Shown here: positions 25,522 to 27,488 of the stretch, piece after piece
Layout of the letters: each line of letters begins with the position of its first letter
Position numbering within the stretch: the stretch's first letter is position 1
Assembly: GCF_963506605.1 (NCBI RefSeq)
Contig: NC_083292.1
Coordinates: forward strand, 34,658,001-34,722,000
Reading direction: 5' to 3'
DNA length: 64,000 bases
Source: Zootoca vivipara
Taxonomy: Eukaryota
Position numbers and translations under genes: made by a program
Notes under the pieces: model-generated
What the model was told of the DNA's origin: nothing
Databases searched by the model: none
What the model saw: only the letters and a program-made list of their open reading frames with translations

Positions 25522-25686
25522 TCATAGCAGTCGGGGCTGGACCGGAGGGCTGTTCTGAAAGAAGTCGTGGAAGAAGGTGCAGGCCGCCGCGATGAAGCGA
25601 ATGTACTCTTCAAAGTCCACTTGGTTGTCCTTGTTCGTATCCAGCAATGCCATCAACTCTTCCAAAGCACCGTCTTTTATTTGAAG
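25522..25686 (-). CDS. S100A3: S100A3-like, second coding exon (54 aa)
   Basis: TAG acceptor after a pyrimidine tract: LQIKDGALEELMALLDTNKDNQVDFEEYIRFIAAACTFFHDFFQNSPPVQPRLL*. LDTNKD, EYxR, CxxxH and PxxxP are colinear with human S100A3, and the gene lies between A4 and A2. S100 identity is certain; orthology is inferred. Confidence 0.8.
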   Translation of the reverse strand, partial: LQIKDGALEELMALLDTNKDNQVDFEEYIRFIAAACTFFHDFFQNSPPVQPRLL

Positions 25687-26384
25687 CTAGGAAAGGAAAA
25701 GAAATGAATGGTTGAGAATGGAGAGGAATGATCGGGGACTGAGGGTCCCTTACAGAATTATCAGCCTAATCATCACCATCATCGAATGAGGGATCATTAA
25801 AGAATTATTATTATTGTAATTTCCCCAATATATACATAGAAATGTAAGTTTGTCATCATGCTGCAGTTCAGGTGGCCACCAACTGCAGCATGATGAATAG
25901 CAGGCAGACAGGAGGGTGAGGAAGCAATGCAGTCCAGATGAGATGTTTGTGGTTTAGAAAGGTGGAGGAGCTTTGGGGAGAACTGTGGGGGGATATGTAA
26001 AGGGGTGGGTGAGGTGTAAAGGAAAGGGGGCTAGTCAGATGTGGGGGAATGGTGGTTGGCAAAAGGTAGGTGGGTTGGCGAGCAGCCGCAGCAGCCCCTA
26101 GTTGTTGCTGTTGTTAGTCTTGACTGATGGGACCTTTAAGAATTATCAGCATGGTACAACAACAACAACAACAACAACAACAACAACAACAACAACAACA
26201 ACATGATCATAGACTTGTAGACTTGGAAGCAACAATGAGGCCTATCTACTCCAACCTCTCTGTAATGCAGAGTGACTGGGGCAATCCAGCCAGATGGGCA
26301 GGGAATAATTCTTATTATTAACCTTACATGGGGCTCAAACCCACGACCCTGAGATTAAGAACCGCATGTTCTTACAATGAGTTG

Positions 26385-26925
26385 GAAAAAAAATGTTTAA
26401 AATAACTTTTTCTAAAAACCCCAAAGCTTTTCTTTTAGGAATTCTAGGTGCTGAAATCCCAAGGGAGCAGAAAAGACTATTTATGTAAGCGACCACGGCT
26501 ATGTGGATGTTATTGGCCCAGAGATGGAAAGAAATAAAGTCTCTACCAGAGAAGAATGGCAGATCAATTGATGGATTATGCTGAATTGGCAAAAATGACC
26601 AGAAGAATCAGAAATCAGGAACACCAGAATTTTAATAAAGAATGGGGGGAAATTATAATTTATCTTAAAAACCATTGTAAACAGTTAAAAAGGTTAGTAG
26701 GACTGGAATAACACTTGTAGTTTAATGGTGAATTTTGGACATAACGGAGATGTAAAAGTTTTGGATTATCATCAAAGAGAAAGGAGGAAATGATTAACAA
26801 CAGGACCCACAAAGGGGAGGAGGAAAGTCCAAGAGATTCCTTGGAATTTTGTTTTTATGCTGTATGTTTGATATGTGACTGTAAAACTTTGATTTGTAAA
26901 ACCAAATAAACAAATCTTTAAAAAG
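26385..26925 (+). mobile_element. L1/Tx1-like LINE 3' end in the S100A3-like intron
   Basis: Decayed FLLGI...LLAQRWK ORF2 C-terminus, then AATAAA and an A-rich end. Similar remnants at about 2930-3340, 6150-6570 and 50300-50600. Confidence 0.55.
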
Positions 26926-27341
26926 CACGCTTCATGTTCTACCAACTGAGTTATCCTGTATGATGATGTATTGATGACTGTGATTATTGTGATGCTGTTG
27001 CTGCTGCTGATAATAATAATAATAATAATAATAAACAAACAAACAAACAAACAAACAACTATTTATATACCACCTATCAACTGAGCCCCCTTTACAGGGA
27101 TAATTTGGAAATCTACGAAACTGCCCCAGGCACCTCAAAATACACATTTCACAGAAAGAATACTGGTGGCATTCAGAATCCCCCTCCAAAACAGGCAGAT
27201 TTCTGATGAATTTTCATAAGGATTTTCTCTCACACACGCACATACACACTGCTGCGAAAATGTGGAGAATGGATCGGAACAAATTCCATCCGCAACCCAT
27301 AATGCTCAGGAGACCGAGAATGGGGTTGGAAGGAGACCTAC

Positions 27342-27488
27342 GGTTTTCAGGCTGGGAAGCTCGTTTTCCAGCAGTTCCTTCAGTTCCCCTTTGCTGAGTG
27401 TGCGCCTGTCGCCTTCCTTCCGGCAGTAGCGCTGGAAAGTGCAAACCAGCCCGCCGAGGGCCTGCTCCAGAGTCTGATACTGCTCCAT
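27342..27488 (-). CDS. S100A3: S100A3-like, first coding exon (49 aa)
   Basis: [49 protein letters not shown], 147 nt, with GTAGGT donor and CAG acceptor near 27513. The LEQAxxxxVCTFQxY motif is shared with human S100A3. Confidence 0.8.

Follow-up and report, generated by a model that had tools for sequence, protein, structure and literature searches.

The stretch of DNA analysed here, a window of 64,000 nucleotides from contig NC_083292.1 of the lizard Zootoca vivipara (positions 34,658,001 to 34,722,000), contains four tandem S100 genes on the minus strand, which local tblastn located in the order g4, g3, g2 and g1. The present text concerns g2, a candidate gene with two coding exons (27488-27342 and 25686-25522) that together encode a cysteine-poor S100 protein of 103 residues. 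We read g2 as the lizard ortholog of mammalian S100A3 and as a functional gene, a reading to which we assign a probability of roughly 0.85.

Coding exon A of g2 (27342..27488, minus strand) consists of the ATG and 48 further codons (49 in total), encodes the S100 pseudo-EF-hand and is matched by the Pfam model S_100 with an E-value of 6.4e-18. It is directly followed on its 3' side by the splice donor GTAGGT, starting at 27341. Coding exon B (25522..25686, minus strand), directly preceded on its 5' side by the acceptor TCCTAG, carries 54 codons and the stop codon TGA (25524-25522). It is matched by EF-hand models and encodes the canonical EF-hand loop as well as C85 and H89 of helix IV (lizard numbering). 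The intron between them (25687..27341, minus strand, 1655 nt) has GT...AG ends, and the exon junction lies in phase 0, with the same placement in the three neighbouring S100 genes. The intron also contains microsatellites of the (GTT)n, (ATT)n and (CAA)n types and a fragment of a tRNA-like short interspersed nuclear element (SINE). Searches were run exon by exon. The joined product proved to be letter-for-letter identical to XP_034954481.1 (P0164), named 'protein S100-A2 [Zootoca vivipara]' by NCBI, and this entry was then used as the full-length reference. A first-pass annotation of this DNA had described an intact 103-residue S100 gene, which the exons, the consensus splice sites and the identity to the RefSeq entry bear out. 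With a pseudo-EF-hand, a canonical EF-hand, about 100 residues and two coding exons split at the hinge, g2 has the features expected of the S100 family.

Upstream of the start codon, a 5' untranslated piece of 24 nt (27489..27512, minus strand) separates the ATG from an AG acceptor (27514-27513). Because all four genes of the array have the same layout of an AG acceptor before the ATG, a further non-coding exon upstream of the g2 ATG is likely. Two putative promoter elements were noticed further upstream by reading the sequence, a TATA-like CATAAAAATA at about 27559-27550 and a TATATAT at about 28830.

The g2 protein has only three cysteines, at positions 16, 22 and 85 in lizard numbering, as compared with ten in human S100A3. 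Residues are hereafter numbered according to human S100A3 (P0166) unless lizard numbering is stated. The first-pass annotation had aligned exon B to residues 48-101 of human S100A3, and the alignment with P0166 is indeed free of gaps. The comparison with the same sequence also agreed with every residue that had been listed as kept, namely C14-T-F-Q, LDTNKD, R77, C83, H87, P94 and P98, as well as with the low cysteine count and the replacements C86->F, C93->S and R51->K. Five of these residues set g2 apart from its paralogs. C14, Q17, R77, C83 and H87 are common to mammalian S100A3 and the sauropsid g2 clade and are missing from nearly all rows of S100A2, A4, A5, A6, g3 and g4, the exceptions being the three A5 rows, which have C83, 2 of the 37 g4 rows, which have C14, and one A6 row with H87. 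They thus probably represent a shared derived core of the S100A3 lineage.

The phylogeny agrees with this residue pattern. Our main maximum-likelihood (ML) tree comprised 88 rows and 101 columns, was calculated with the LG+C20+F+G4 model and posterior mean site frequencies (PMSF), and used fish S100 proteins as the outgroup. In this tree, 26 squamate and turtle g2 rows joined 14 mammalian S100A3 rows in one clade with 99/95 support and a stem of 0.27, excluding S100A2, A4, A5 and A6. An ML phylogeny had been proposed as a check by the first-pass annotation, and its outcome favours S100A3 over S100A2 and S100A4 as the partner of g2, as the approximately unbiased (AU) test rejected trees in which g2 was held together with A2/g3 (p 0.029) or with A4 (p 0.027). 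Trees holding S100A3 together with mammalian S100A4 were rejected as well (p 0.008). The clade of g2 and S100A3 was recovered with exon A alone and with exon B alone (77.6 and 87.1, respectively, in the Shimodaira-Hasegawa-like approximate likelihood ratio test, SH-aLRT), and it had 99/98.6 support after removal of all 10 human-Cys columns. Two artefactual origins of the grouping were considered and rejected: a chimera or gene conversion between paralogs, because both exons place g2 alike, and an artefact of cysteine composition, because the clade persists without the Cys columns.

The position of g2 within the array could be compared with the mammalian gene order. The first-pass annotation had located the gene between S100A4 and S100A2 on the same strand. 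This order was correct, but the array was incomplete, as it consists of four tandem S100 genes rather than three; local tblastn found no further S100 exons in the window beyond g1-g4. On one side of g2 lies g1 (15580..17651, minus strand; exons 17651-17511 and 15744-15580), the S100A4 ortholog, which encodes exactly the protein P0234, 'protein S100-A4 [Zootoca vivipara]'. On the other side lies the A2-like g3 (35896..38793, minus strand; exons 38793-38653 and 36060-35896), which encodes 101 residues, groups with mammalian S100A2 with 83/95 support, albeit on a long branch (0.49), and has the motifs AVFLAL and FV..K.DE.G in common with it. The exact g3 product was absent among the 365 proteins fetched, and g3 was represented in the alignment and tree by its two exon translations joined from the window sequence. 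The order g3 (A2), g2, g1 (A4) in the window equals that of mammals, where read-through fusion proteins in the databases join A2 to A3, A3 to A4 and A4 to A5, in this order. A corresponding fusion protein from a snake joins A5 to A6.

The fourth gene, g4 (44462..46776, minus strand; exons 46776-46636 and 44641-44462), is an additional gene of sauropsids and lies upstream of A2. It encodes 106 residues including six cysteines, its product is identical to P0263, and it clusters with 'S100-A4-like' proteins of tuatara and birds in a clade (97/98 support) that has no mammalian member. P0263 is likewise named 'protein S100-A4 [Zootoca vivipara]', so that g1 and g4 carry the same name in this species. 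Read-through proteins of birds join g4 directly to S100A4, which suggests that birds have neither an A2-like nor an A3-like gene.

Several of our results weigh against the orthology of g2 and S100A3, and most of them can be accommodated by a rival explanation, namely that g2 stems from a duplication specific to sauropsids, with g4 as its sister or with A2 or A4 as its source, and merely resembles S100A3, mammalian S100A3 having emerged separately from S100A2. We consider this duplicate origin quite improbable. The AU test did not reject trees holding g2 with g4 (p 0.155) or S100A3 with mammalian S100A2 (p 0.076). However, the unconstrained tree places g2 with S100A3, as do the trees from either exon and the tree lacking the Cys columns, and a tree constrained to unite g2 and g4 can still put S100A3 beside the pair, in which case g2 would be a co-ortholog of S100A3 rather than an unrelated gene. 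Sauropsids have four genes as opposed to three in mammals, and position by itself is insufficient for orthology; against a duplicate origin, g2 occupies exactly the position of S100A3 between the orthologs of A2 and A4, and the partner of S100A2 is g3, not g2. The raw identity of g2 is only 40% to human S100A3, compared with 45-47% to A2 and A4, because mammalian S100A3 lies on a long branch. The five derived residues shared with S100A3, by contrast, are spread across both exons. A separate origin of mammalian S100A3 would also be in line with the name 'S100-A2' that NCBI gives to the Zootoca protein and with the report that hair keratinization associated with S100A3 and PAD3 started in mammals (PMC9386831). 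The tree itself has limits, as its stems are long (0.39 and 0.41), the alignment has 101 columns, and the S100A3 sample is eutherian-heavy with many partial rows. Furthermore, its g3, A5 and A6 groups are thin because a broad word search with a mixed profile, of which the best 120 of 1010 matches were mostly S100A4, had neither g3 orthologs nor stand-alone A5 or A6 sequences among the matches listed.

Sequence searches with the individual exons differed in how well they separated the paralogs. In an exhaustive HMMER search, exon B retrieved the squamate orthologs first (Gekko 83 bits, Pogona 79, Anolis sagrei 59), followed by representatives of mammalian S100A3 with 43.8-51.1 bits; the best S100A4 hits overlapped with the lower end of this range (up to 43.8 bits), and S100A2 scored 35.8. 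The top mammalian S100A3 score against the lizard exon B (51 bits) belonged to felid (Prionailurus) models named 'S100-A3' or 'S100-A3-like' (P0009, P0010), which themselves lack several cysteines, with G at position 53, R at 68 and V at 93. The sequence search of the PDB by exon was non-discriminating: exon B slightly favoured S100A3, and the best score of exon A alone was with S100A2, which is a further point on the opposing side.

We next considered how widely g2 is distributed. Word searches detected g2 orthologs in geckos, lacertids, Rhineura, Elgaria, Salvator, Hemicordylus, Varanus, iguanians and many snakes, as well as in more than 20 species of turtles, and a word search starting from the gecko ortholog alone returned squamates only. 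Sauropsid orthologs, such as those of Podarcis, Gekko, Python, Rhineura, Salvator and turtles, are 59-97% identical to g2 with equal length and motifs; eight squamate orthologs have 33 invariant columns in common, and the 103-residue products of five lacertid species are 94-100% identical. Among the scored candidates there was no g2 ortholog from birds, crocodilians or tuatara, though other S100 proteins of these taxa appeared, which hints at a loss of the gene in these lineages. The first-pass annotation had inferred that S100A3 predates the mammal-reptile split. This view gains support from the 99/95 clade, its recovery with each exon and in the Cys-free tree, the position between A2 and A4, and the orthologs in both squamates and turtles. 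We therefore propose that g2 would have arisen before the split between mammals and sauropsids as the middle member of an S100A2-S100A3-S100A4 tandem array, persisting in squamates and turtles.

The orthologs of g2 end at about 103 residues in lacertids, geckos, snakes and turtles. Those of iguanians have acidic, low-complexity C-terminal extensions of 40-100 residues, as in Anolis sagrei (P0007, 209 residues), Pogona (P0131, 144) and Sceloporus (P0194, 141), which may reflect either a real shift of the stop codon in Iguania or artefacts of the gene models. This single orthology group goes by at least eight names in the databases, including S100-A2, A2-like, A3-like, A4-like, A5-like, A6-like, A11 and S100-G-like. 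UniProt lists the Salvator and Pelusios genes as 'S100 calcium binding protein A3', and several squamate ones are called 'S100-A3-like' by NCBI. The inconsistency probably arises because raw identity misleads, and reptile database names for g2 orthologs are thus unreliable.

That this lizard has a silent or decaying g2 in spite of the intact reading frame, with a protein that serves no present function, appears extremely unlikely to us. Two observations nonetheless count in favour of silence and add to the points against our reading: among the sequencing runs found to hold the stretch, none was recorded as RNA, and no canonical AATAAA was found within 780 nt past the g2 stop. The first polyA signal there is an ATTAAA at 24732, 789 nt downstream of the stop, as compared with an AATAAA at 47-176 nt past the stop in the three neighbouring S100 genes. 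Moreover, the promoter candidates of g2 come from inspection of the sequence only. Decay is difficult to reconcile with the intact open reading frame and splice sites, with the near-identity of the products among the five lacertids and with the conservation of functional residues over squamates and turtles. Small runs guessed to be RNA contained 0.19-0.23 of the sampled words, approximately the share of exons and untranslated regions in the 2201 bases queried, which is a weak hint of transcription, as the same share is also expected from exon-capture DNA.

The residues that give human S100A3 its distinctive properties were traced across the same rows. The Zn ligands of the human protein, C83, C86, H87 and C93, were reportedly described by Fritz et al. 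in 2002, and its disulfide pairs, C30-C68 and C81-C99, are reported to have been defined by Unno et al. in 2011. R51 is the target of PAD3, whose action drives tetramer assembly (PMC7014782). In g2, the four positions of the disulfide pairs are occupied by S30, N68, A81 and R99, well short of a set of about ten cysteines. At the Zn site, C83 and H87 are kept next to F86 and S93, and turtle orthologs keep C83, C86 and H87. A lysine replaces R51 in Zootoca, as it does in 28 of the 30 squamate rows filled at this position and in 19 of the 23 such turtle rows.

According to the residue table, C23, C30, C53, C68, C99 and R51 occur in mammals only. C86 behaves differently, being present in S100A3, S100A2, S100A4 and 23 of 25 turtle rows and replaced by F in 30 of 31 squamate rows. 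Because turtles, S100A2 and S100A4 have it, C86 is judged from this distribution to be ancestral and lost in squamates. C81 is found in S100A3, S100A4 and g4 with V or A in the sauropsid g2 clade, where it was presumably lost. Position 83 is F in 11 of 31 squamate rows, including those of snakes such as Python (P0196), which has only two cysteines, and C83 would thus have been lost later within part of the squamates, breaking the otherwise conserved C83/H87 pair. The first-pass annotation had suggested that the Zn cluster, the disulfides and the citrulline switch were added in mammals, or else lost in the lizard. Addition in mammals holds for C23, C30, C53, C68, C99 and R51 but not for C83, H87 and C86, which are older. 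The disulfide partners and the citrullination arginine may accordingly be regarded as mammalian novelties, and much of the Zn site (C83, C86, H87) probably predates the split between mammals and sauropsids. The three supposed mammalian additions therefore do not have one shared history.

What the lizard protein does can be approached from its predicted structure. The AlphaFold model of g2 has four main helices and a predicted local distance difference test (pLDDT) score of 74, and its best PDB matches in Foldseek are Ca2+-loaded S100A2 and S100A4 with template modelling (TM) scores of 0.7-0.8, a comparison that does not tell the paralogs apart. The canonical EF-hand loop is intact, with D65, N67, D69, Q71, D73 and E76 (lizard numbering), and the pseudo-EF-hand keeps its terminal Glu. 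Because of the complete canonical loop, the terminal Glu and the fold resembling that of Ca2+-loaded S100A2 and S100A4, g2 would act as an ordinary Ca2+-sensing S100 homodimer, which is the most likely behaviour of the modelled protein. The old core would have been conserved for about 300 million years; it consists of C14 in helix I, of Q17, where His is usual, of R77 and of the helix IV residues C83 and H87. The trio C16, C85 and H89 (lizard numbering) could plausibly form a Zn2+/Cu2+-binding or redox-sensitive site. Without C86 and C93, two of the four Zn ligands are left in g2, and with K in place of R51, PAD citrullination can neither act at position 51 nor drive tetramer formation there. 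That the metal site and the dimer are inferred is a point to be set against our overall reading.

The idea of an early origin is not new. The full mammalian complement of the S100A2-A6 clade has been reported to be present by the amniote ancestor (Wheeler et al., 2016; PMC5072561), and we found no per-species listing of S100A3 in the supplements of that paper. A later preprint from the group of Wheeler et al. treats S100A2, A3 and A4 as an amniote outgroup to A5 and A6. The hair literature presents S100A3 as a protein of the mammalian hair cuticle whose evolution was coupled to that of PAD3 in mammals (PMC7014782, PMC9386831). Our literature search, whose coverage did not extend to Minato, Unno and Kitano 2019 (Gene 713:143975), found no paper on the cysteine-poor, K51 state of the reptile protein. 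A text search of the literature found no paper using the term 'S100A3-like' and none of relevance on the S100A3 Zn site via Cys83/His87. The novelty of the present finding is modest, as g2 was already annotated, several databases use S100A3 names and the early origin of A2-A6 has been published. What is new is the order of changes, residue by residue, in the S100A3 lineage, in which the core of C14, Q17, R77, C83 and H87 would already have been in place in the amniote ancestor, and five extra cysteines and R51 would have followed in mammals only. Such an order would outline how a structural protein with disulfide locks, Zn binding and a citrulline switch developed from a generic Ca2+ sensor. 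The conserved cysteine-poor K51 ortholog of squamates and turtles could serve as a natural 'before' protein for biochemical comparison.

We also entertained the idea that the sauropsid S100A3 ortholog is expressed in hard cornifying appendages such as claws and scales, which we regard as rather unlikely. If it were true, the hair cuticle would have taken over an S100 that amniotes already used in their appendages, and C14, C83, C86 and H87 would represent an ancestral metal site. The additional cysteines and R51 would then be refinements made later in mammals for disulfide cross-linking and for control by PAD3, and the whole course would parallel that of the hair-keratin-like genes of reptiles.

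The closest known system is mammalian S100A3 (human P33764; PDB 1KSO, 3NSI, 3NSK, 3NSL and 3NSO), the sister clade of sauropsid g2. Like mammalian S100A3, g2 is located between S100A2 and S100A4 on the same strand and has the same exon junction; unlike it, g2 is devoid of C23, C30, C53, C68, C81, C86, C93 and C99, with an identity of 40%. In keeping the KEGD-type loop of the pseudo-EF-hand and the ELPS motif, g2 resembles S100A2 and S100A4 (PDB 4DUQ, 3C1V and others) rather than mammalian S100A3. Those two paralogs, however, have H17 and N87 and lack C14, C83 and R77, unlike g2, and the window holds, beside g2, its own ortholog of A4 in g1 and an A2-like gene in g3.

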